Source: Klebsormidium nitens (Eukaryota > Plantae > Klebsormidiophyceae). Taken from it: a DNA stretch of 47,322 nucleotides. This document shows positions 6,850 to 24,528 of this stretch, in pieces (the first letter of the stretch is position 1; every line of letters starts with the position of its first letter). Where the stretch lies: NCBI GenBank assembly GCA_000708835.1, contig DF237598.1, forward strand, positions 1-47,322, written 5' to 3'. The notes beneath the pieces were generated by a model, which did not search any database, was not told the DNA's origin, and saw nothing but the letters and a program-made list of their open reading frames with translations. Made by a program: the position numbers and the translations under genes.

Positions 6850-9800
6850 ATGGGCGACTCTGATCAGAGCGACGATGAAGAAGGCTCCCTTAGAAGAGCG
6901 TTTGAGCACGTAAAGTCACTGCGGGACGAGAACGCGGTTCTGCGGCAGAACTTTGAAGACGTGAGCTCGCCTTCACAGAAACCTGAAGAGCTGCTAGCTG
7001 AATAAAGTGGCAGACAGCACGACTTTGCAAAGCCATGCGCATTGGGGCTGCTTGCCACCTCGACCACTTTCAACATGTGGTGGTACCTTCATGGTCAATG
7101 CTTGTGACTATCTTGCATGCACTTAAAACGATGGCAACCAATGTCAGCATTATGGAAGGAGTAGCGGCGCAAACCAGCAGCTCAGAGCTACAATGAGTCA
7201 CCCTCAGGGCATCTCAGTACACGTAAGCTAAAGCACGTCGAGCTGTCACGGCACTCTCTTGAAAGGTTAGCACCGTCGTACCATTCTAAAAATGCAGTCA
7301 ATGCTGAGCCTGTGATTGTTTGCAGTTGAAGGCCTTGTACGCGACATGCCTGAGTGAGAAGGAACAGCTTGGAGCTCAGCATGCTGCAACGCAGGAGGAC
7401 ATGGTAAGGCCTCCCTCCCGCTGTGTGCCACCTCCTTCAAAAATGCTTGAGAATGCTACTTTTGCGATAGACAAAGTTTTGATCGCTCGGGCAGCTTGGC
7501 CCACCGTCTAGGTTAGCAGCCTGTGCGCCCTGGTCTTCCATTCACGCATTTGTTGGGGCTGGTGCAGCGCCACCAGGAGCGCCGCTATGAGGAGCTGTGT
7601 GAGCGGTGGCGCGGCGAACTGGAAAGCAGGCAGCGGGAGCTAGAGGATGCACAAAGACACGTTATGACAGCAGAGTGAGCAGGACGCTGGCCACAGGATA
7701 AGCTTCTTACTTGCTAAGTTGCCCAATAAGTCCTGACAGTCCCTGTTTGGCTCCACCGTCATAAAAGGTGGTGGCGTTCTTGATTCCTTCATTCTTGATG
7801 GCACCTCCGCTGGTGGCCCCTCGCAGTGGCTCCTCTTTGAGAGCTCGTGAATGGGTGCAGGGACGTGGAGGCGCTGCGCCTGCGCATGGTGGAGCAGCTG
7901 GAGGGCCCCCATCGTGCGCGCTGCACGGCGCTCGAGCAGGTGCGGCTTTAAGGAGAGGAGGCGTGCACGCTATGCCGCCTTGCACAACCAGCACCTGAAG
8001 CATGCTCTTGCCTGGAACAGGTGCAAGATGGCTGGCACTGTATATGCATCCCTGGCAGGAGCAGCTGCGCACCGCTGGCAAACCTTACTGATGATCATCT
8101 GACCGGTCATGTAAGACACCATCTAGAACTTGCTGCCAAGAAACACGGATGCTGCTGTGTTGTGTACCAGGAGGCCGAGGTGGCCCATCAGCAGGCGGTG
8201 CAAGCGCGGCGCGAGGCGGAGCGGCTGCAGATGGACATGGAAGCACAGGTACGACCAGACTCCCGCAAGTGGCAGCCTCCGCCAGCACTACCCTGATATC
8301 GATGTCTAGTGCTGGGCATACGCATGCGCTTGCCTTTGCAGTTTGTGCGACCCTCCTGGTGTTTGGCAGTGTGATTCGAAACAGTTGATGGCAACAGGTC
8401 CTGTGATGTCATTCAAGCGGCCTTGCAAGAAAGCCTGCAAGAACCACCTTAAGTCCCATGTTAAGCAGCCAAGGGCCGGCCTGCTATGTACAGGTGGCCC
8501 GCGCCACGCAGGCGCTGCTGGCCAGAGTGCACGAGCTTGAAGCAAGCGAGAGGGCTAAAGACACGCAGGTGCAGCGGCTCACAAGCGAAGCAGGTAGGAG
8601 GTTCGGGCCCTGTCGTGCAGCTTTCGGCTGTGGGTCCTCATGTGCGTGCATAACTGGCCGTTTTGTTTGGGTTCGTGTCCCTCAAGCAGGCCTATCTCAC
8701 ACCCTGCCTGTCAGCAAGGCTCAAAGCTTTGTGCGCTTCGGGCATCGATCTCGGGGCAACACTTCAATCGCCACGTCTCTCACCTGTGCTGTGTCTCTGC
8801 TGCTGCAGCCGTGCACCAGGGCGGCGCTGAGCGGTGCGCTGCGTTGGAGCGGCAGGTGGAGGCGGGCCGGGCGGAGCGGGGAGCGCTGCTGCGCGAGGTG
8901 GAGCAGGTGCGCAGCGACAAGGAACGAGCGGTGGTGGACAAGGAGCGGGCCAGCATTGAAGCGGAGCGGCAGGCGCACACACTGCGGGCGGAGGCGGCGC
9001 AGCAGCGGCGACAGCTGGAGGCCGCGCGGCGGCGCTGCCAGCACCTGGAGAGCGAGGCCCAGCAGGCGGGGGCGGAGCGGGAGGCAGCGCGCCAGCGCGT
9101 GGGGCAGCTGGAGCAGGAGCACCAGCGCGCCTCCGCGGGGGCCGAGAGGACCATCCACACTCTTGAGTGAGCGCTGCCCCCGCCCCTCCGCTGCGGCAAA
9201 AGCCTGGAGCGAACACACATGGTGGAGCGCATTTCCAGTGCCCAGGCCCTTGTGAAGAGCATCGCTGTCTCGTTGGAGCTGCCTGTCAGCCAGACGTCCT
9301 ACGTGAGAGCCGGGTGGACAATAATAGGAACCCTGCCCCGTGCCTCCGTCTCAGGTCCGCGGTGTTCGACTTAGAGGCGCGGCTGGAGGCAGCGATGCAG
9401 GAGGGGGAGGAGCAGCAGCGGGAGCAGCAGGCGGCGCTGGAGGAGAAAGAGGCGCTCATCGCGGGGCTGGAGGAAGCGCACCGCGAGCAAACGGCCACCC
9501 TCTCCCAGGACTGCGCGCGCAAGGTCGGCCGCCGACAGCCACTCATCGGAGGCTTATTGCCTCGCGCCGCGAGTACTTGTGCTGAAGATATGAGGCTGTT
9601 GGCAGTGGTGGCAGTCTGTCCGGGAACCAGGCATTACACTGTGGTTGGACTTGGGGCAATACTAGAGTTCAAAACATGTAGCCAATGCGCATTGACCAGT
9701 TGAATCTCTTGTTGGCGTTGACAAAACCGGAGCAATATCAACATGGCGGGTGCTTCTCGACTCGAGGGACTGTCTTGGCTACCAAAAAGCGGAGGGTGGG

Positions 9801-11893
9801 ATTTCAGCCAAGGTCGAAACGGTTTCCAGTAGAAGTGCCCCTTCCAATTCTTGTCCGGGTGTTTCTAGCTTCCAACGACCAAGTGCAATGAGGGCGAAGC
9901 GAGATTGTAGCTTTCCCTGTGGTGAGCGTGGGGCGTGGCGTGCAGGTGCAGGACGAAGAGGAGCGACAACGCGCTTTGCGGCGCAGCCTGGAGGGGGAGG
10001 CCGCCGACCTGCGCGCCGCAGTGACGGCCCTGGAGGAGGCTGCACGCATAGCGGAAGCGCGCCACGCGGACCAGCGGGAGGCCGCGCAGCGCGAGCTGGA
10101 GGGGGCGCGGCGGCAGGTGCAGGAGGGGGAACTGGAGCGGGCGGCGCTGCGCGGCGCGGCGGCCCAAGCACGGCACGACAAGGAGCAGGCGGACAGCGAG
10201 GCGGCCGCGGCCAGGCAGGACGCGGCGACGGCAGAGGGGGAGAGCGAGGCGGCAAGGGAGCGGCAGCGGGAAACAGAGCAGGCGCTCCGTGAAACGAAGT
10301 GAGCCGAGCGTTTGCATGGCACCACTGTAAACAAGCAGGCAGTCCGTTGCACGGATGGAGCGCTAGGGACTGTCCTTTTGCCCTACGGTAAAGGATGGCT
10401 TTGCCAGTGAACTTCGAGGCACGCGGCACTCTCAATATGATGTCGAGCAACAGCGATCTTGCTTCTTATGCCGAATGTTATTCGACAGGTAGGAGTCGTC
10501 AGGTTCCCTTTGAAGATGCCGATTGGCTGCCACCAGGTTTGAGCCTCGGAGGATGTTGTGTCGGCAGCCCGGCAGGGCGGCCTGCTGCTACTTGTCGTGA
10601 CGCTAAGCGGGCCGCGTGCGCGGTGCAGGCAGGAGTGCGACCGGCTGCAGCAGAGGCTGGAGCGCACGGAGCGACAGCTGGCGGAACTGGCGGCGGTGGC
10701 GGCAACGGAAAGGGAAGAGCTGCAGGCACAGCTCGAGGCGGAGAAGGTAGGCCCGCGGCCCGCTGTGGCCTCTTCTGCAAAGTGCGGGTAGAAGAAGCGC
10801 TGCCCTTCTTGAGTACGCTTGTGGACGCAGTCCAGTCTAGGCAGGAGATCAATTCATGCTTGAACAGCTGCGTCCTGTCATCATGCGTCCCGGCCAAAGC
10901 ACAAAGCAAGGTTTTGTGTATGGAGTGCTACGACCCTGGACGACGAGGGTGAGGCCTTGCTCGAGCTCCGGCGCCGCCCGCTTTGGGCCCCTGGTGACCC
11001 ACTCCGCCTAGCTGTGTTCCGCCGTGCAGCTCATCCAGTACGAGAGGGGACACAGGAGCGGCCGCGAGGAGGCGCAGCGGGCAGCAAGCGCTGCCGCCGA
11101 CCGGGAAGCGGCCAAAGTGGCCGCGTTGAAGAAGGTAGGCGGGAAGCAGCTAATGCCAACGAGGAACCGACCGCTACTTTGGCGAGACTCGTTCTCGAGG
11201 TAGGAGCTGGGAAGCAGTTTACAAAACCTCCGGACCAATAAGGCGCTGAGTCCTACTTGCTTCTTAACGCCTGGGCTTCCTACTCGTGCAACAAAAGAAT
11301 AAAATTGCAACTCGAAACCCTGAGCGTCCTGTTAAGCGCCGGACTGGCCGGGGAGGCCTCACTCGAGATGGCGTGTGCGTGTGCAGAAGCTGCAGCAGCA
11401 CCGGCAGCTGCTGGCCGGCGTCGCGGCGGAGACAGCCGTCGCAGGGGGCCGACCAGCGGGAAACGCCCACTGGCCCGCGGAAAAGCAGGTGAGTCCCACT
11501 GCGTCAGCACGGTACGCACGTCCCTCGCGATGCGGCCAGGATAGAAACTCAGCCAATCGAGGTCCGGGCAAGTTGTCGTGTGCACTTGCTGGCCATTTGC
11601 TTGCCGAAAAGCCCAAAAAGTAATAAGACAAACAATGAATCGAGTCGACCATGAGAGCCGACAATGAGCGCCGAGCAATATGAGGGCCGAGAGTTTCCTT
11701 GGGGTCGCCTAGAGCTTTCCTGGAGAGCGCTTTGTCTGCACTCCTGACTCACCTGTGCGTGTACGTTTTGCAGAGCAGAGGCCGGTCAGGTGTCGCTGCC
11801 GACGCGGGCGGGAAGGCGAGCTGGGAGACGGCGTGGTACCGGAGCCAGATTGACATGCTGCGGGACAGGCAGGCCGCCTTCCTCCATACATGA
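6850..11893 (+). CDS. CEP83: CEP83/CCDC41-like long coiled-coil protein (centriole distal appendage/transition fibre), multi-exon
   Basis: ATG at 6850, exons joined in phase by GT-AG introns, stop at 11893 (..DRQAAFLHT*). Spliced WRGELESRQRELEDAQRHVMTAEDVEALRLRMVEQLEGPHRARCTALEQEAE aligns without gaps to recalled human CEP83 [61 protein letters not shown] resembles CEP83 EKLQRAAIA. Confidence 0.7.
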
Positions 11894-14800: not shown

Positions 14801-15013
14801 TCAGATAGGCATTGATTTTCTGAATCGGTCAACTCTCCGTCTCACAAAAGGCCAAAGAATGAGCATTGAAGGCCCCAAAATGTCTCCCTACAACTTTTCC
14901 GGCTTAAATGCTTCCGGTGTGTGATATGTCAGACTTCTTCCACGAAGAGATGGGGATCTCAGCGGACCAGCGCTGCCGTCAGCGGAGACCCTTCCAAGCT
15001 TTTCGACCCGAGT

Positions 15014-16129
15014 ATGAAGGAGTTGGAGCTGGCTCTGGCGAAGATTGAGGACCGCTTGATCGTTTTCGAACAAAAGCTCTTGGACAGCAGGGTCGCCCGG
15101 CAGGAAAGGAGGGCGACAGGGGGGCCGTGCTGGCGGTGCGGGGCGGTCGCCTGCTGCCGCTGGTACTCGAGCCCGGAGCACGGTCCCCGGTCGCTTTGCT
15201 GCCCGTGCCATGAGGTCACCGTGGGCGGCCCGTGCTGCCGCTGCGGTCGGGAGAAGTGCATCAGCTGGTACACCGGGGAGAAGGGCTCCCGGACGCTCTG
15301 CTACAACTGCTACAACCAGACCAGGCGACCGGAGAGGAAGAGGCGACAGCGGGGAAGGACGGTCACGGAACCTGATACTGCCGGATCGAGCGGAACCAAA
15401 CGGAAAAGACCGGTGCGGGTGGGATCGGAGGAGATGGAAGAAGGAGGAGGAGAGCAGCGCTCGCAGGGGGACCCAGTTGCAGGAGAACGGAGACGCGCGT
15501 CCCATGCGGGGAGGAACAAGGGCGGAGTCAGCGGAAGCGGAACTTCGCGTGCGCCCTGCAACAAGGAATCAGCAAACGGGCAAGAATATGTATACGAAGG
15601 AGAAGATCCCCTCTTGGAGCTTGACGTCATGGATGTGATTGGGCTGTTCGAGGCGGAGGAGAACTCCGCGAGGCACCGGAGAGCAGAACGGCAGAAAGCT
15701 GCTGCAGAGCGCAAGACTCAGGCGGAGACGGACTCTGCTGAAGATTCAAGGAGCGACGATCATGGGCGGTCATATCGCACGAGCGGCCCCAACGTCAGGG
15801 GCCGTGGGAGAGAAAATAGACACGAAGAAATTGGCGCGATGGGCGAGGGGAATCTGGCCGCGCGCGCGGGCGTGCCACGCGTGCACCACGCGTTTCCGAG
15901 CGCCGGAGACTCGGAACCGGGAGCTGTATCCGTGGGCGAGCAAGGAGTGGAGTTCGGGGACTGCCTGCTTTTTGAAGAATTTTTAGCCGAAAGACGGCAA
16001 GAGGAGGGCAGCGGAACGGGGATGGAGACGGAAACGGAACCAGAAACGGCGCAGCCCGAAGGGGGGACGGAAATTTTGGTTCTGGCAAAAGCCTGGGATG
16101 TTGCAGACACTTTGTTAGAGCGGAATTGA
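15014..16129 (+). CDS. ORF with a short N-terminal coiled coil, two tandem GATA-like zinc fingers (15128-15310) and an acidic disordered region; possibly the 5' part of the DRD1-like gene
   Basis: First in-frame ATG at 15014. Fingers are CWRC-x19-CCPC and CCRC-x18-CYNC. Each is preceded by GGP and keeps the W..G...LC pattern of GATA fingers. Stop TGA at 16127-16129. Confidence 0.65.
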   Translation: MKELELALAKIEDRLIVFEQKLLDSRVARQERRATGGPCWRCGAVACCRWYSSPEHGPRSLCCPCHEVTVGGPCCRCGREKCISWYTGEKGSRTLCYNCYNQTRRPERKRRQRGRTVTEPDTAGSSGTKRKRPVRVGSEEMEEGGGEQRSQGDPVAGERRRASHAGRNKGGVSGSGTSRAPCNKESANGQEYVYEGEDPLLELDVMDVIGLFEAEENSARHRRAERQKAAAERKTQAETDSAEDSRSDDHGRSYRTSGPNVRGRGRENRHEEIGAMGEGNLAARAGVPRVHHAFPSAGDSEPGAVSVGEQGVEFGDCLLFEEFLAERRQEEGSGTGMETETEPETAQPEGGTEILVLAKAWDVADTLLERN

Positions 16130-16136
16130 TTTTAAG

Positions 16137-19100
16137 GGAAGAGAATAACAGAGGACAGAGAGCCGAGCGGGCACGTTCACACCGAAGCGTGCCTGTCTTT
16201 TGATCGCGAGTACGGCCGGTTCTACCGTGTGACCGGGGACTTCCTGGGGCAAGCAGCGGTTGAACATTTTTCGGCCGGCCCGGGAAGGGCTCCTCAAGAC
16301 GACCGATCAGACTGGCAGGACCGGTGCATGGGCCGGATGTTAGAGCGGCTCTGGGCGCAAAAGGAGCCTGCTTTTGCCGGTTGGGAGGACGAAGCGAGAA
16401 AAGGAAACAAGAAGCGCATAACTTTGGAGGACATTCCGGAGAGTCCGCGATCGCATTCTGCGGCGGTGAGGGCGGCAGAACGGAGGACACCGGAGGAGCT
16501 CGTGGCGGAACACGGAAGCGCCTCGGCCGCGGCATTCTGGGCAGTTCTTGAAGAAAGAAAGAAAGCTATGAAGTCGCAAATAGAAGGGTTCGAGTTTACG
16601 ATTATGAATCTGACGGGTTCGGCTGATGGGCTGAGCGGGCAAGCGGATACATTGGGTGGCGCCTCCGAATCAGGCCCCGCAGAAATCGGAGGGGGTTCGA
16701 GTTGCAGGGCGGCGTTTGAGGGCGCGGGCAAGGGCTGCATTCTGGCGCACGCTCCGGGGTGTGGAAAAACATTGCTGGTAAGCTATCGACGTTTTGCTTG
16801 TAAGCTATCATACTTGCGTATGCGGCTGGAAAGAGAAACAACGCTTTCTTTGTAAGACTTTCGTCCCCTGTGCCAAACGCATAACATGTGGCAGTGGTCG
16901 CAAAGTGACCTACACAGTCACCTGATTCTAGTAAACAAGAGTACAGAAAGCGCTCCTCAGAGGAAGCTTTGAGTAACCGCGGCGATGCAACCGGGATCTT
17001 CAATATATATATTTTTGAAGTCGGATATTCAATCGCACGTTTCCAGGTATCTGCCAAAACGTCGCAAAGCTGGTCAAAAGGTTGATCCAACGTGTGGTCT
17101 TGCTCGACAGGGATGGGCGTTATTTTGGTGGCTGCGACGCCTCTACCCCGGTCTCCGCTGCTTGACACTCGCCCCGGCGTCCGTGCTCGAGGTGTGGGAG
17201 CACCAGCGGCCGGTGTTGATGAACACGTACCACGTGGGCCCTGCACAAGGGCTTCGGACAGGTGACGTCACCGAACAGGAAGCGGGAACAAACTTCGCCC
17301 GCTGTCTGAGGGACTTGCGGGAATGGGCGGAGAAGGGGGACGGGATGCTTCTGCTCAGCAACGAGAGGATGCGGGTTCTCCTGACGGCCGCGGCCGCGAC
17401 CGCGCCCGAGGTGACGCGACTGCTTCTGGAGGCGCCAGATGTCGTCTTCTTTGACGAGGCGCACAACCTGAGGAACGATAAGACGCGGCTACACCAGTAC
17501 ATACAGTATCTAAGAACGCCTCGGCGGGTGCTACTCACCGGTGGAACATCCGTGATTTTTTTGTCATTATAAGATTTTTGGCCATTGCAATGGGCTTTTT
17601 TAGCGGAAAGGGATCAGCTTCGAGCTGTTGATCCTGATGCAATTCTAATGTAGCATGTGAACCGCTGTTGCTGATTTCCCCTTCCGTTCCTAATGGATTA
17701 TCGGGCCCTTTTCTGCGTGCAAGTTGCGATGTTACACACTTGTTTAGAACTTCGAGAATCTCAGCGCCTTTCTTACAGACTGGACGAGTTCAAGGATGGC
17801 CGTTGCTCAAGATGATCGAATTGTCCGCGGGAACTTCAGGAAGAAAGTCAGCACGGACGGGTCTGAAGAAGCTCTGCAGAGAAGCGCTTGACATGCTCTG
17901 ATCAACTATTTCCAGAAAACCGTTGATCTTTTGTCCGCAGGAAACACTGCGAAGGATCCCACTAAGGCGTCCATTTTGGACTTAAAAAGGTCATAAGACT
18001 GCAGGCACAATAAGGTCGTTGCTGATCCGCAGGTACGCCGTTCAACAATTCATTCGAGGAGCTCTGGACGTTGCTCTACTTTGCACAGCCGGACACCATG
18101 CTCCGCTGGGGCGCCCACGAGCTGCGTTCCGCTGGCGGCGCATTAACGGAAGTACAAGCCCGGCGCGCGTTCCTAGAGGTCGCAAAACGGGAGAGAAGAG
18201 CACTCAACGCCATCTTGGCGCAAGTCGTTCATTCGAGCGCAAAGCGCGCGGCCGCGCCCAGCGGGGGCGCGCTCACACACACGGACATGGTCGTCACTCT
18301 GAACATGACGTCAGAGCAGGCGGGGTACTACAAGGCGGTTGGAGCGGGCCAGGCTAAGCGGAGTTCCGGTGGGGCTGAAGTGGGCAGAATGGACGACGGC
18401 AGCGGGGCGGAGGCGGCAACGGGTGGCAATCTATTCAGCATGGAGCATCTTCTTAGTGTGGCATGCGTGCACCCCGCTGCACTTCCGCCATTCAAGTACG
18501 AGGATCTCTGCTCAGAAGAGCCGTGAGCCGTCAAGCCTTCTCTTCCTCCGTCTCTAGCATGTGAATGTTACTACTAGATAACTCTGCTTCAAAGCTCGAG
18601 GCGGCTTCCCCGAATTTTGTTGCATTTTTAGTCTTCGTTTGAAGCTCTTTACGGATCTACTCCATGTGTGATGTTGCAAGGATAGCACCAGTCAGTTCCA
18701 GAAGTAGAGTGCTTATACTTCTACGTTTTGGCTGACAGTTACGCCTATTAAAAGAGGATTATTTTCTGTTGAGTTACAAAAGGGTTACCTCGACGAAGTA
18801 ACCCTTGTTGCATCGCGTGTAGAGAGAACATCACAGCCAGGCCCATATGTTCGAGAAACACTTTTCGTCAATTGCGACTCTGAAATTTAAATAAAGTTAG
18901 CCGCGGACGTGCTATCAACCCCCCCTAACCATTCTGACTCATCTTCCTTGCAGCTCCCTCCCCGCATACTCGGATGACGTCAGCATCTCTCGCAGCTGCA
19001 AGACGCTGGTCCTCAGCTGGCTTGTCGCCCGGGTGAGAGCCACCGGGCGCGTCGTGGTCTTTGGTGTGAACGTAGAGCCGCTTAGGGTGATCGCCCGGGG

Positions 19101-20634
19101 GCTGCTGGCGCACTTTCCTGACTGGGAGATGGGGCAGGAGATCGTGCACATCGACGGGGCAGTCAGCCAGAGCGTGCGGAGGGAAAGGTGGGGCAGACGT
19201 GCTCTGACTCGTTCACTCTCTACCATTCGAAGACGAAAGACTTACGAAGTCTATTCTTTTCAAAAGGTTCGGAAATATCAGTGTGTCAGAGACAACTCCC
19301 TGCGCAGAGCTGCCCGTCAAATCGAGGTTGTGCCACGCTCTGATCGCTCAGCGGGTATGATTTCGTAACACGCTGGCATCAGTCGACTTGGAGAACCACA
19401 GAACCGTTTTCGTATCCACTTCGCTCCCTCTTCGACCTTGCAAAGAGCGCCGTCTCCCTTCGAATCCTCTGCTCTGCAGAACCTACATCTTGTCTCCTGA
19501 ATACCTTAAGGAGATTGCGATTCGAGCACTACTTCTTATACAGACTCGATTGAAGCAAAGTCATCGTCACTCGGTGAAAAAGTCACGAGTGTCTATTTTT
19601 CCTGAACTTGTCTTCTTTGGCCAGGCGGGAGTGGTTCAACGACCCTCGGAGCCGGGCAGTAGTGCTGCTAGCCACTGTGGAGACGTGCGGTGAGGGAGTC
19701 GACCTTTCGGGGGGAACCCACGCTGTGCTGCTGCAGCCTGTGTGGAACCCCACGGTGAATGAGCAGGTGCGCGCGGAGACTGCTTAGAAGAAACCGTAGA
19801 TACACCAAAGGGAGTAGTTGGTAGACGCGCATGGTCGATTTCGGGCTCATCATATCCGCATTGTTCGAAGCTGAATTCTAGACCAAAGAACACACTCGGG
19901 CGGTAAACAGACCTGTGAGAAGCTGCAGGCCCGGTCTTTGAATTTTCAAATGATCAAAGCATGAGGTTTGTTAGCAGCCAGAGCCTTCTTTCATTACGTG
20001 GCTGGATGACCATAGAAGTCGGGTGCTGCTGCATAGGACCGTTGGCTTCTGCCTTTTCGAAGTACTTCAAGACGTTCTGAACCCGCCGGAACAAGGCTTC
20101 CAAACACACCGATTCGGAGAACCTTCCAAGAGAGTCGAATCCCAATCAAAAGCTCTCTTTAAAGAGGGTCGGAACCAAGCTTGGTCTTTCCGAAGTCCCT
20201 CTTACCTCCAACATCAAGTAAGGCTTGGTTCTATCACATAAAGTGCAACCAACTCCTTGCCCTCGTCCTCATCTTTCCAAACATCTTCTTTGCAGCTCAT
20301 TGGCCGCCTGGTCCGCCCCGGTCAGAAGGGCCACGTGTACATCCTCCGCCTCATCTGTTGCCGCTCTCAAGAGAATCATATTCATGAGCGGGCGGTCCAG
20401 AAGGAGCAAACTAGACGCGACCTCTTTTCCCCGAGCGGAGGGATGGGCGACCAGGTCGGGCCGGGCGTTCCGAGCCGCCACATCACCAATGAAGGCCCGC
20501 TCAGTACTGCTGCTGCCCATGCACCATTCGTAGACAGTTTGCGGCAGCTGGTCGATGGAAAGGGACGCCCAATAGTTGCGGATGTGATAGACTACGAGAG
20601 CTTATTCAAGGGCAAGGGAATGGAACTCCAGTAG
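16137..20634 (+). CDS. DRD1: SNF2-family chromatin remodeler of the plant DRD1/CLASSY subfamily; 5' end uncertain (next in-frame ATG 16328)
   Basis: QIEGFEF..NL, GCILAHAPGCGKT (DRD1: GCILAHAPGSGKT), LTLAPASVLEVW, PDVVFFDEAHNLRN..LRTPRRVLLTG|TPFNNSFEELWTLL, LSVACVHP, RVVVF..PL..DWEMGQEIVHIDG, FNDP..TCGEGVDL..WNPTVNEQ|LIGRLVRPGQKGHVYILRL. All are joined by in-phase GT-AG introns. Stop at 20634. Confidence 0.85.
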
Positions 20635-21596
20635 CGGCCCCCCTTGTTTGTTGCCAACCGTTCACGAACTGGCCTCAGAAACGCTTCAGTATGCTCTCAC
20701 CTGGCTGCAAGAAATCAGAATGGATAAGAGATTGGCAAGAGCAAGCCGAGCATCTGTCTCGACCTGAGCCTCGGCTTGTGGCCCCTGGCGCTGATTGCCA
20801 AAATCGCCCTTGGAATTGGCACATCGAAACACACTTCTAGAAGTTCCGCTCGCCACAGCAATCATTTGCGCTTACATGGGACGTTTAGAAGTCATCAAGT
20901 CACCCGACTATTTTTCAATTGCCGCCCTGAAGGCGGTTAGTCCTTACGCGTAAATGATCGAGCAGCTAGTGTACAATTCTATAGGCCATACTTCCTCCAT
21001 ACTTCATGTGGCACGTTACCGCAGTTCGGGGCAAGCTTCCCGATTCTCGATAGATTGGGTCTACCTATTTAGATACTAGATTCTATCTACTTTAGCTCTT
21101 AGCCCCCATTTAGCATTTGCGCCATTGACGTTGTTGAACAGCTTTGAACTGAAGCAGCCGGCGAGGTACACAGGGGATCATGATCATCGAGCGCTAGAGT
21201 CTCTGCACGTCGAGCTCCATCTGACGGACTTCAGGTCTCCAGGCGTAGTCAATTCTTCATTGCTGTGACGTCCATTAACATGGTTAAACGCAACTAGGAC
21301 TATAAACTTCGAAGCCCTATTTGTGTCTGCGACATATTTTAACGTCTGCGCGGCGACTCGCGGCCGCGAGCGCAGGTTTAGCTAGGCTCCCGAGGCGCCG
21401 CGCGGTTCGCTCGCTGGTTTGCAGTTTTAGCGGCTCGAACTACAAAAGGTGTCCCGAAAACCGGGTTCTCGCTTCGATCAAGGTCACGGGTAACTCTGTA
21501 GGGGACGGCCTGTTGCAATCAGGCTGCATGTCGGGTTACGAATACCGTAGTCTGTCGTGTAAGCCCGATTCTAGTTGGCAAGATTTAGTTTTGGCT

Positions 21597-21965: not shown

Positions 21966-24528
21966 ATGGTGATCTTTGCAAGATCAGCAGGAGTGGTGCT
22001 TCGAAGAACTCAAGATCTGCCTTCGGTGCTGCAGTTGATCAGCGCAGCAACTTCTATTCCCTCCAAGCTTGCATGTTGTCTCGATTCTTCCAAGAAGAGC
22101 ACGCAGCCATGTGAGAGGGACGTGTATCTGGAGGAGGGTGCAGGTTTTTCCAACACAGGCATATACGACAACCTAGTCTTTTCCGGCAGCCAGTTGCCAC
22201 CCAGTAGCGGTGTTCCTTTATGGGCGCAGCGATCTGGTTGGTACTCGTCAAGTAAGCTGCTGTTGAGTATTAACAGGAGCTTCTTCTCATCCAGCTCTGC
22301 AGCCTCTGCGGAGGGAGCAGACCGGGTGCGGAGCGACACGCCGCAACAACCCCAGCCAGTGTCTTGGCGAGATTTTGAGGACATTGGCATCTGGACTGTT
22401 GACGAAGATGCCTCCCCAGCCAAGCACCGAGCCGATGGGCCCTCTGCCCTGCATCACTCATCGCACCCGCCTGACCGACCAGCTGATAGCCGAGGAGCCA
22501 CGGCGCCTGGGGGGCGCAGAGCTGAGACAGTCGCAGACGGGGGGATCAGGTCGTCCAGCGGCGGCTTTCTCCACGTTTCCGAATATGGGGATGAAGAGGA
22601 GGCAACCACCTCAAGTTCTCACTCTGACAACGCTACGAGCATTTGGAGTCGGAACGCGGAGTCGGCCACCACTTCGTGGAGGGACTTTGAGGACATGGGC
22701 GAATGGGTGGTGGACAAAGCGGAGGACGACACGGACGCTGCCATCCACACACAGCAGGGCAGGGCAAAGGGGACCCCCAACGCAGCAGCGGGGCTCGCTC
22801 GGCCCCCCAAGCTTACGCCGAAGGAGCGGAAAAAGAGGAAGAAGCAGATCAAGGCAGGGGAGTTTGTGCTGCCCAGGTTCAAGGGGCCCTATTTCACGGA
22901 GGAAGAGAAGAAGCTGTCGTACTTCGACCTGTGCCAGCTGCCCAGCCTGCGCGGCGTGGCGGAGGTGCCCGACTTCCTGCGGCTGTCCGACGAGGACCTG
23001 CTGGCGCAGTGCGACGTGCAGACGGGGCGCGGCACCGGGGGGCACAAGGGCCACGGGCGGCCCAGCAGTGTGCTGCTGAAGCACCGGCCCACGGGGCTGG
23101 CCACCGGCTGCGACAAGACACGGTCCGTGTACGGCAACAAGATGAAGGCACTCGATAAACTGCAGGAAATGATTGCACTCAAAGGTAGGGAGGCTGGGAA
23201 CCCCTGCCCCCTGAGGCCTGCCTCTTCACTCTTCATTGGTTGATGTGTGCGCCAAGGTCGAAGGACCCCGACATGTGAAGTGCCATCAGGGTGGTGAGCT
23301 GCCTAGTACCAGACTGTCCTGTCCAGACATGAAAGTATCCAGGAAAATGGTTTCTTTGTAAGTGCGTGGCTCTTGGCCAACTGGTCGTAGTGGTTGACCC
23401 CTCCTTGTTGTCTGTCGCCTCCAGTCCGCCGGCGGATCCCCGAGGGGCCGTACGTGCCCCCACGGCGGGTGCGGTACATGATGCCTGCCGAGGACCTGCA
23501 CCCGGACTGGGCGCTCAGCAAGCACGTCAGAATTGGATTCAAGACGTCACCATTTGTCAAAGTAAGACTACGTCACTCGAATGCTACCGTTTGAAGGCCC
23601 TCTGCCACTATGCCAGGTGTCGTCCATTTGAATTTTTGGGCTTTAGCCCTTTCTTCCCCAAGTCCTGAGCTGACTTCTACATCGCGGCTGAGTGTCTGGT
23701 TTTGAAGGCTCCCATCGTGAACCATGCAGGACGATTTTGATCCAGCTTGAGACGAGAGTAGTGTTTGTGCAAGGCTCAGTAATCTCACTTCCTTTGAAGC
23801 ACTACTACAAGCGGAAGGCTGCAAATTTTCAAAAAAAAGCCTAGGCTCTAGTGTCTCAATCTGTTCTATACGACAGAACTGGTCGATTCGATGAACCGTT
23901 GCTGATGTCACTCACTTGAGGATCGTCCTTCGTGGTCCACGGGGAACGCCTCTTTGTCGTTCACGGCTCTGGCCTGGCGCCGCACTCCGTGAGCCCCAGT
24001 CTTGTCCAGAGGTCCGCCCCCCGGCCCCCTGGCCTGGCTGTCCCCTCTGACCGGCCCCTGATGCGCGTGCTGGTGCTGCTGTGGTGGCAGGGGTGCCAGG
24101 TGCTGCTCGACCTGCTCGTGTCCTGCGACGGCGACTTTGGCGTGGCGGCGGAAAAGATGCGCATGACCGAGCAGCGCTTCCGCCGTCTGCTGAACCAGAA
24201 CATCCACGTCAAGCACTACGTCAAGCTGTACAAGGACTTCAAGGTCAGCCCCCAGCGCCCGCCAAGAGACCAGACTGCTATGCCAGCTTTTTCATATTTG
24301 GAGTCGTTTTGTATGTCATCTTGAATCGTTTTGACGAGGGCGTTTTGCTTTGTCGTCTAGTGCGGTTGAAACTGCCTCTTACGATCGCGTCCTGACCTCT
24401 CTTCTTCCACTCTCTCCCAGAGGCAACGGTTTGTGCTGGACTACGAGGCGGGTCTCATAAAACCAGAGCAGTTGCAAGGGCCGGCTGATGGCACTGAAGC
24501 GAAGCACAAGGACGGCGGCCAAGCATGA
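21966..24528 (+). CDS. Plant-type organellar class I peptide-chain-release-factor-like protein with a degenerate GGQ (GGH); probably four exons
   Basis: Long exon 1 with an Arg/Ser-rich, transit-peptide-like N-terminus. Then FLRLSDEDLLAQCDVQTGRGTGGHKGHGRPSSVLLKHRPTG..RSVYGNKMKALDKLQEMIALK|VRRRI..|GCQVLLDLLVSCDGDFGVAAEKMRMTEQRFRRLL. This is colinear with the recalled plant RF-1-like family (LTDEEL..QC..GPGGQHRNKRESAVRLKHLPTG..RSQHKN..AL..GMQALLDL). Last exon ends at TGA 24526-24528. Confidence 0.8.

Follow-up and report, generated by a model that had tools for sequence, protein, structure and literature searches.

A CLSY/DRD1-like remodeler locus of Klebsormidium nitens with GATA-like fingers and two in-frame stop codons

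The locus described here lies on the + strand at positions 15014 to 20634 of the window, by which we mean the whole stretch of 47,322 nucleotides (nt) that was analysed (Klebsormidium nitens, GenBank assembly GCA_000708835.1, contig DF237598.1, positions 1 to 47,322). An open reading frame (ORF) for two zinc fingers of GATA-like spacing is followed there, in the same frame, by the exons of an SNF2-type ATPase whose nearest named relatives are the plant remodelers CLASSY (CLSY) and DRD1, and the two parts are split by the in-frame stops TGA-TTT-TAA. On balance, and with moderate confidence, we take the locus to be a diverged CLSY/DRD1-like duplicate whose first exon has been cut, such that its product would be a 371-residue two-finger protein and its SNF2 half would be a remnant or weakly expressed on its own.

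Judged from sequence homology, the fusion of finger and remodeler is real and ancestral to a pair of K. nitens genes, of which the window copy is the broken member. This conclusion does not depend on any predicted splice, given that one exon of the sister gene spans the finger, the linker and motif I and that homology between the two copies continues through the stops. The public protein model of the window locus, GAQ90503.1, already presents an intact fusion, and we infer that this 1088-residue protein is an artefact of gene prediction.

An ancestral finger-remodeler exon and its interruption

The finger ORF occupies 14870-16126 in frame 2 of the + strand. From its first ATG at 15014, 371 codons (15014-16126) run to a TGA at 16127-16129, which is followed by TTT and then by TAA at 16133-16135, all in one frame. 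The frame reopens at 16136 and remains open until 16852, the actual exon end being 16777. From 16169 onwards it reads GHVHTEACLSFDREYGRFYRVTG, and the earliest ATG downstream of both stops is located at 16328. The interval 16136-16327 has the composition of an exon, with GC fractions of 0.67, 0.52 and 0.66 at the three codon positions compared with 0.50, 0.45 and 0.42 in the next intron. SNF2 motifs I to VI are spread over six intron-separated blocks 3′ of the stops, the last of which ends at the final stop, 20632-20634. An earlier sequence-only reading of this DNA had proposed that the finger and SNF2 ORFs share one frame and are separated only by TGA-TTT-TAA, a layout that the ORFs and the sequence confirm.

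A second K. nitens protein, KFL_005460070 (P0004, 1473 amino acids), was retrieved at 43% identity and 436 bits when the SNF2 part of GAQ90503.1 (P0001 hereafter) served as the query of a word search. K. nitens has at least two CLSY/DRD1-like paralogs, at 15014-20634 of the window and at L002:4001-10511, with this degree of identity over the ATPase. P0004 carries one copy of the finger, GGPCWRCARAVCTVWYGSAFGPKTECYPCYEETRRRGRKRR, to which both window fingers are similar by BLASTP (expect values, E, of 7e-10 and 5e-9): finger 1 (15119-15211) is 51% identical to P0004 231-266 and finger 2 (15224-15358) is 52% identical to P0004 234-266. The linker that follows, residues 162-330, is colinear with P0004 421-597 (BLASTP, E 7e-6) and includes a conserved block, GV(E/G)FGDCxLF(E/D)EFL, which lies at 15944-15985 and reads GVEFGDCLLFEEFL in the window and GVGFGDCPLFDEFL in the paralog. 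The whole 371-codon ORF is homologous to the N-terminal half of KFL_005460070 exon 1 and colinear with it.

Homology does not end at the stops. Positions 16169-16777 are 53% identical to P0004 671-855 (E 2e-61), and a single tblastn alignment joins P0004 421-697 to window positions 15497-16249 in one frame, passing through the stops as ‘*F*’ (E 1.3e-11); the shared frame is thus not a product of chance. On the strength of this alignment and of base composition, 16136-16777 is assigned to the remainder of the ancestral first exon, which holds a conserved block (EDIPESPRSHSAAVRAAERRTPEELVAEHGSA), GFEF, and motif I as GCGKT, and the stops themselves fall in a poorly conserved linker of that exon. 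In the paralog, a single unbroken exon of 2565 nt, part of an open frame of 895 codons, encodes residues 1-855 and reaches from 5′ of the finger as far as motif I. The five later introns occupy the same positions in both genes. The paralog differs from the window copy in having one finger instead of two, approximately 230 additional N-terminal residues and no stops. In addition, two of its cysteines in the pre-ATPase segment (16169-16237 in the window), which belongs to the remainder of the first exon, are replaced by Tyr and Ala in the window copy.

These comparisons suggest a simple history. The ancestral gene would have possessed a long first exon whose single frame covered a GATA-like C4 finger and its basic tail, a linker of acidic/basic character, a short His/Cys segment and the start of the ATPase, and the sister gene KFL_005460070 would retain this architecture. 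In the window copy, the finger would have been duplicated in tandem, and the two stops, three codons apart, would have cut the exon in its least conserved linker. The mRNA from the locus would then encode only the 371-residue two-finger protein, and the SNF2 part, no longer translated with the fingers, would be a decaying remnant or at most weakly expressed alone. The sequence-only reading had favoured an algal remodeler equipped with its own DNA-reading module. Such a fusion does exist in the family, as the single paralog exon demonstrates, but an intact, self-targeting fusion protein finds no support at the window locus. The alternative offered in that same reading, a recently broken fusion, fits this locus best.

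The SNF2 half downstream of the stops

Transcript-like contigs were available from four runs of one 2024 study, guessed to be RNA, each consisting of about 40 Mb of contigs in about 100,000 pieces. On the 5,961 bases compared, each run gave one contig, located at 14898-15073 (run X4), 15007-15228, 15729-15957 and 15954-16202 (contig X1). All four lie within 14898-16202 and none is on the SNF2 exons (16203-20720), a distribution that by our own arithmetic has a chance of about 0.002 if the pieces fell evenly. The X4 contig includes a 5′ leader at 14898-15013, and an upstream ORF of 40 codons in another frame (ATG at 14926, stop at 15046-15048) overlaps the main ATG at 15014. This arrangement may damp translation of the finger ORF.

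Contig X1, which comes from this separate study, matches the stop-containing sequence 15954-16202 with 0 differences and so reproduces both stops exactly. The same contig runs unspliced through the stops, but it is a low-depth contig, and transcript ends are beyond its reach.

A relative of the SNF2 half was found by searching a whole protein library with exon 3 (HMMER). In addition to P0001, the locus’s own model, which was recovered at 99% identity, this search matched only a Logan fragment of 142 amino acids (P0002, from SRR23617307) and one spurious repeat protein; exon 3 alone is too divergent to reach CLSY/DRD1 proteins. Similarity between the window and the 16-kb locus of P0002, termed L001, is confined to 16585-20627 (L001:8282-12698), with exons 78-93% identical and introns 53-63% identical. 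In both sequences an AG|GGTTCGAG site marks the sharp onset of homology, and upstream of this point L001 lacks a finger ORF and a pre-ATPase block and shares none of the window's neighbours. No fused orthologue is therefore present in L001, the sole related genome fragment found. Given that this only relative from elsewhere keeps just the SNF2 core, we count it in favour of a cut duplicate. Over 597 codons, the ratio of nonsynonymous to synonymous substitution rates (dN/dS) between L001 and the window is approximately 0.41-0.47, with dS near 0.3. Within L001, exons 2 and 3 contain 1-nt gaps, and the flanks of the copy are unrelated. L001 could be a pseudogene truncated at its 5′ end, or assembly errors could account for the gaps.

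Several observations weigh against the view that the locus now serves only to express the fingers. The contigs are Logan contigs with a depth of about 3 and are only guessed to be RNA, and transcript ends or rare spliced forms are beyond their reach. The two stops aside, the frame is open over all of its approximately 1,100 codons and every helicase motif is preserved, and therefore either the break is recent or the SNF2 part is still in use. The conservation of exons relative to L001, together with the dN/dS values, indicates some constraint on the SNF2 core, as far as sequence comparison can speak to it. Furthermore, a pair of stops confined to nine bases looks like a fail-safe terminator and suits an orderly fission better than it suits decay. 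Finally, the SNF2 part may be reached by reinitiation or by an internal start, even though the 199 nt between the first stop and the ATG at 16328 leave little room for a second promoter.

Many of these same features would be expected of a functional fission, wherein two working genes have arisen, one for the two-finger protein and another for a CLSY/DRD1-like ATPase translated from the ATG at 16328, on its own or a shared transcript, and the two products may act in trans. The tandem stops, the open SNF2 exons and the exon conservation with dN/dS near 0.45 all agree with this possibility. The Met at 16328 is matched by a conserved Met within the paralog, and the duplicated finger keeps every conserved residue and has a GC fraction at third codon positions (GC3) of 0.89 over 15014-15343. 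Land plants offer a precedent in that CLSY3/4 are targeted via separate transcription factors, according to a recent report (10.64898/2026.09.10.746872). However, no contig is on any SNF2 exon, and a transcript-like contig takes up 73 of the 199 nt from stop to ATG. A protein begun at 16328 would lack the conserved pre-ATPase segment (16169-16237), and the 1-nt gaps in L001 hint at a paralog lineage in decay. We therefore regard functional fission as a possible but rather unlikely account, and continue to favour a cut duplicate with a two-finger product.

The predicted intron of GAQ90503.1

GAQ90503.1 (P0001; A0A1Y1IIH2) is annotated as ‘RAD54-like’, has 1088 residues and derives from the same scaffold. 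It begins at the ATG of the finger ORF and fuses finger and SNF2 parts across a junction that reads ...GGTEIL|YGRFYRVTG.... A walk along the DNA places its exons at 15014-16078, 16211-16777, 17111-17540, 18033-18522, 18954-19187, 19625-19766 and 20296-20631. The last five of these are SNF2 exons 2 to 6. Exon 2 carries motif II as DEAH and has an intron position in common with the paralog; exon 3 carries motif III as TGTPFNN, and exon 4 holds the start of the C-terminal lobe. Exon 5 is assigned to Helicase_C and is 93% identical in DNA to L001, and exon 6 (20296-20634 with its stop) carries motif VI as QLIGRLVRPGQ. Fusion in this model relies entirely on a predicted intron of 132 nt, 16079-16210, that drops both stops.

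Should the public model be correct, 16079-16210 would have become an intron, and at least some transcripts would yield the fused 1088-residue protein. The interval does have GT...AG boundaries, its removal preserves the frame, its GC fraction, at 0.51, lies closer to the intron range (0.44-0.50) than to the exon range (0.59-0.65), and everything downstream is intact. However, the donor (TTG|GTTCTG) and the acceptor (GCGAG|TA) are atypical, given that each of the 10 conserved introns examined (five from this gene and five from the paralog) combines a GT[AG] donor with a CAG acceptor and measures 333-529 nt. KFL_005460070 has no intron at the matching position. Moreover, the predicted intron removes codons at 16169-16210 (GHVHTEACLSFDRE) that are homologous to paralog coding sequence for P0004 671-684 (GHTHDESCVKIDPE), and contig X1, the sole contig over the predicted donor, continues unspliced for 123 nt beyond it, through both stops and with no joint. 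For these four reasons, the intron at 16079-16210 is probably not real, and we consider a spliced fusion doubtful.

The sequence-only reading had also stated that no strong splice donor could remove the stops, and had listed a weak GT near 16079 that turns out to be the donor of the public model. Our own scan agrees with this assessment, in that it found no in-frame GT/GC...AG intron that removes the stops with a donor scoring at least 6/8 and a pyrimidine-rich acceptor. As it stands, the locus probably does not encode a single fused protein, its frame being interrupted at 16127-16135 and the one contig across the predicted donor being unspliced.

A continuous ORF whose stops (TGATTTTAA) are sequencing or assembly errors, or are bypassed by readthrough or recoding, would explain why two parts in one frame show homology across the break, but it is highly improbable, with assembly error ruled out by the independent contig that reproduces 15954-16202 exactly and readthrough made very unlikely by two different stop codons, TGA and then TAA.

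Fingers, ATPase and the targeting of CLSY/DRD1-type remodelers

The finger ORF starts with a short helical stretch that is followed by two near-identical modules of the form GGPC-x-RC-x4-C-x2-WY-x4/5-G-x4-C-x2-C. Finger 1 (GGPCWRC...WY...G...LCCPCH) uses C39-C42 and C62-C65 with 19 residues between the pairs (CX2C-X19-CX2C), and finger 2 (GGPCCRC...WY...G...LCYNCY) uses C74-C77 and C96-C99 with 18 residues between them (CX2C-X18-CX2C), after which comes a basic tail, RRPERKRRQRGR. Both the spacing, which falls within the CX2C-X17-20-CX2C range of GATA fingers, and the adjoining basic region are as expected for a GATA finger. The likeness extends to plant-type GATA fingers (CX2CX18CX2C; Arabidopsis GATA18, 8j48), which have similar Cys spacing and a similar basic tail. 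In contrast, the window fingers have WY in place of TPxWR and C[YC][PN]C[YH] in place of LCNACG, and they possess an extra invariant Cys in the loop.

Profile and structure comparisons point in the same direction at low significance. The Pfam family PF00320 was matched neither by the two-finger segment or either finger singly at E up to 10, nor by the whole finger ORF or the paralog finger (P0004:215-290) at E up to 1, and the only Pfam matches of the finger region, DUF7685 and C6_DPF, are below threshold. When a profile built from the three fingers was compared with 177,635 PDB sequences, the best match was Arabidopsis GATA18 (8j48) at E 0.2, which is below significance; the alignment is free of gaps and holds the four Cys, the Trp, one Gly and the Leu-Cys in register. 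An AlphaFold (AF2) model of the finger, with a mean pLDDT of 69, exhibits strands and then a helix whose start coincides with the second pair of Cys. GATA fingers make up 8 of 19 Foldseek rows, all with E above 3, and the first four places in VIA-align go to AreA, GATA-1 (twice) and GATA-2 (Z 3.1-3.9, root-mean-square deviation 1.9-2.9 Å, 36-44 residues). An ESM feature search returned GATA clusters at 0.77-0.82, which is under the trustworthy level.

The description of the fingers as GATA-like, made initially from the letters alone, is thus weakly supported: the spacing, the top profile match and the top fold matches agree with it, but in Pfam no GATA match appears even at E 10. We conclude that the finger is GATA-like in spacing and, on the evidence of modelling, probably GATA-like in fold. 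By sequence, it would not qualify as a demonstrable GATA-family member, several signature residues being replaced, and DNA binding by it is putative. A word search with the finger ORF among candidates of 204-649 amino acids returned nothing, which shows only that the database holds no stand-alone model. A finger-only word search in long proteins gave back just the query and was without power, with even P0001 below E 10. Metagenome scans with the pre-ATPase block and with the finger profile yielded no relatives.

The ATPase of P0001 matches SNF2-rel_dom at 79.7 bits and Helicase_C at 37.6 bits, both above Pfam thresholds, and contains GCGKT, DEAH, TGTP and QLIGRLVRPGQ. Its best named relative is CLASSY 2 of Cryptomeria japonica (P0005) at 139 bits, compared with 64 bits or less for SWI/SNF-type remodelers in the same search; among solved structures (PDB), it scores 82 bits with ISWI, 76 with DDM1, 68 with RAD54 and 55 with ATRX. 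Searches of PDB exon by exon gave no significant matches. The nearest ESM Atlas clusters, at 0.97-0.98, are named ‘CHROMATIN REMODELING 35-like’ and ‘CLASSY 3’, and CHR35 is DRD1 in Arabidopsis. Both lobes of P0004 align with CLASSY 2 at 29-35% identity by BLASTP, beginning from the FEF motif. BLASTP stops short of the pre-ATPase segment, in which a three-sequence alignment identifies a D..Y..F(C).....F pattern in common with Cryptomeria CLSY2, the Cys being Tyr in the window. Search scores and ESM Atlas clusters thus support assignment of the ATPase to the CLSY/DRD1 type, as had been suggested earlier. We also considered a transposon-borne helicase, which is unlikely for a gene that has CLSY/DRD1 affinity and five conserved intron positions.

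The land-plant counterparts, CLASSY1-4 and DRD1 (CHR35), are SNF2 remodelers that recruit RNA polymerases IV and V (Pol IV and Pol V) in RNA-directed DNA methylation. In addition to being the nearest named relatives of the K. nitens ATPase, they resemble it in the AHAxGxGK context of motif I and in the FEF motif. They differ in that no finger is reported for land-plant members, and in that the window copy is interrupted. Cryptomeria CLASSY 2 nevertheless has an N-terminal SAWADEE domain (residues 4-120, Pfam E 7.8e-10) and is, like the finger-bearing paralog with its putative reader, a remodeler of CLSY type whose own polypeptide includes a module for chromatin reading or targeting. By sequence, this protein shows that CLSY proteins with a built-in reader module occur in land plants too. 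Its module, however, is a histone-mark reader and not a zinc finger, and the N-termini of CLASSY 2 and P0004 are without homology. In Arabidopsis, the SAWADEE domain is supplied in trans by SHH1.

Charophytes, including K. nitens, are described as having a single CLSY/DRD1 homolog (Chakraborty et al. 2024, PMC11194755), compared with the at least two paralogs of K. nitens described here. That paper places a K. nitens homolog with CLSY/DRD1 without giving a gene identifier. We found the finger nowhere mentioned in it, and neither ‘zinc’ nor ‘N-terminal’ occurs as a word in its text; the gene identifiers of the two paralogs were not found in our literature search.

The surroundings of the two genes are dissimilar. 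On DF237495.1, KFL_005460070 (L003:1-8075, - strand) stands head-to-head, at a distance of about 1.9 kb, with a gene for an Rpb1-like protein of 1692 amino acids (L003:10001-16511, + strand) whose active-site exon reads GADFDGDTIGWF. The best match of this exon is Arabidopsis NRPD1 at 43.3 bits, almost level with yeast Pol III RPC1 at 43.1 bits, and no polymerase is higher. Although all polymerase scores are low, the neighbour is, from its sequence, best described as a divergent largest subunit of Pol IV/V-like type. The window locus has no such neighbour, and in a synteny comparison, the flanks of the paralog locus were without counterpart in the window or in L001. Downstream of the window locus, an ORF of 425 codons (21966-23243) carries, close to the C-terminus, a weak RF-1 (peptidyl-tRNA hydrolase) match that misses the Pfam cutoff (E 4.8e-05), and the + strand ORFs located upstream at 8458-10302 are coiled-coil-rich with a weak Rootletin-like match.

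In the intact paralog, the finger and its basic tail plausibly tether the remodeler to DNA in cis, and this remodeler plausibly serves the adjacent Pol IV/V-like polymerase, a role for which their head-to-head placement is circumstantial evidence. A comparable form of sequence-directed recruitment operates in Arabidopsis, where a transcription factor-GDE1-CLSY3/4 route is reported to target Pol IV to DNA motifs (10.64898/2026.09.10.746872). The DNA reader in Arabidopsis is a separate protein, whereas the putative reader of the Klebsormidium paralog would be part of the remodeler itself. One could go further and propose that the GATA-like finger was the working DNA-reading module of an ancestral charophyte remodeler of CLSY/DRD1 type, and that the window catches an intermediate of fission on the way to the separate-factor guidance of land plants. 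We consider this broader scenario to be speculative and unlikely.

What is new, then, is an undescribed finger on the CLSY/DRD1-like remodelers of Klebsormidium and a corrected reading of GAQ90503.1, as opposed to an intact fusion at this locus. In practical terms, GAQ90503.1 would be better called a CLSY/DRD1-like paralog interrupted by two stops, and it is unsuitable as evidence for an intact fusion protein. Recent land-plant work has DNA motifs read by separate transcription factors (10.64898/2026.09.10.746872). If a CLSY/DRD1-like remodeler of charophytes bears a GATA-like finger of its own, encoded by one exon with it, this would represent a simple solution of ancestral origin.

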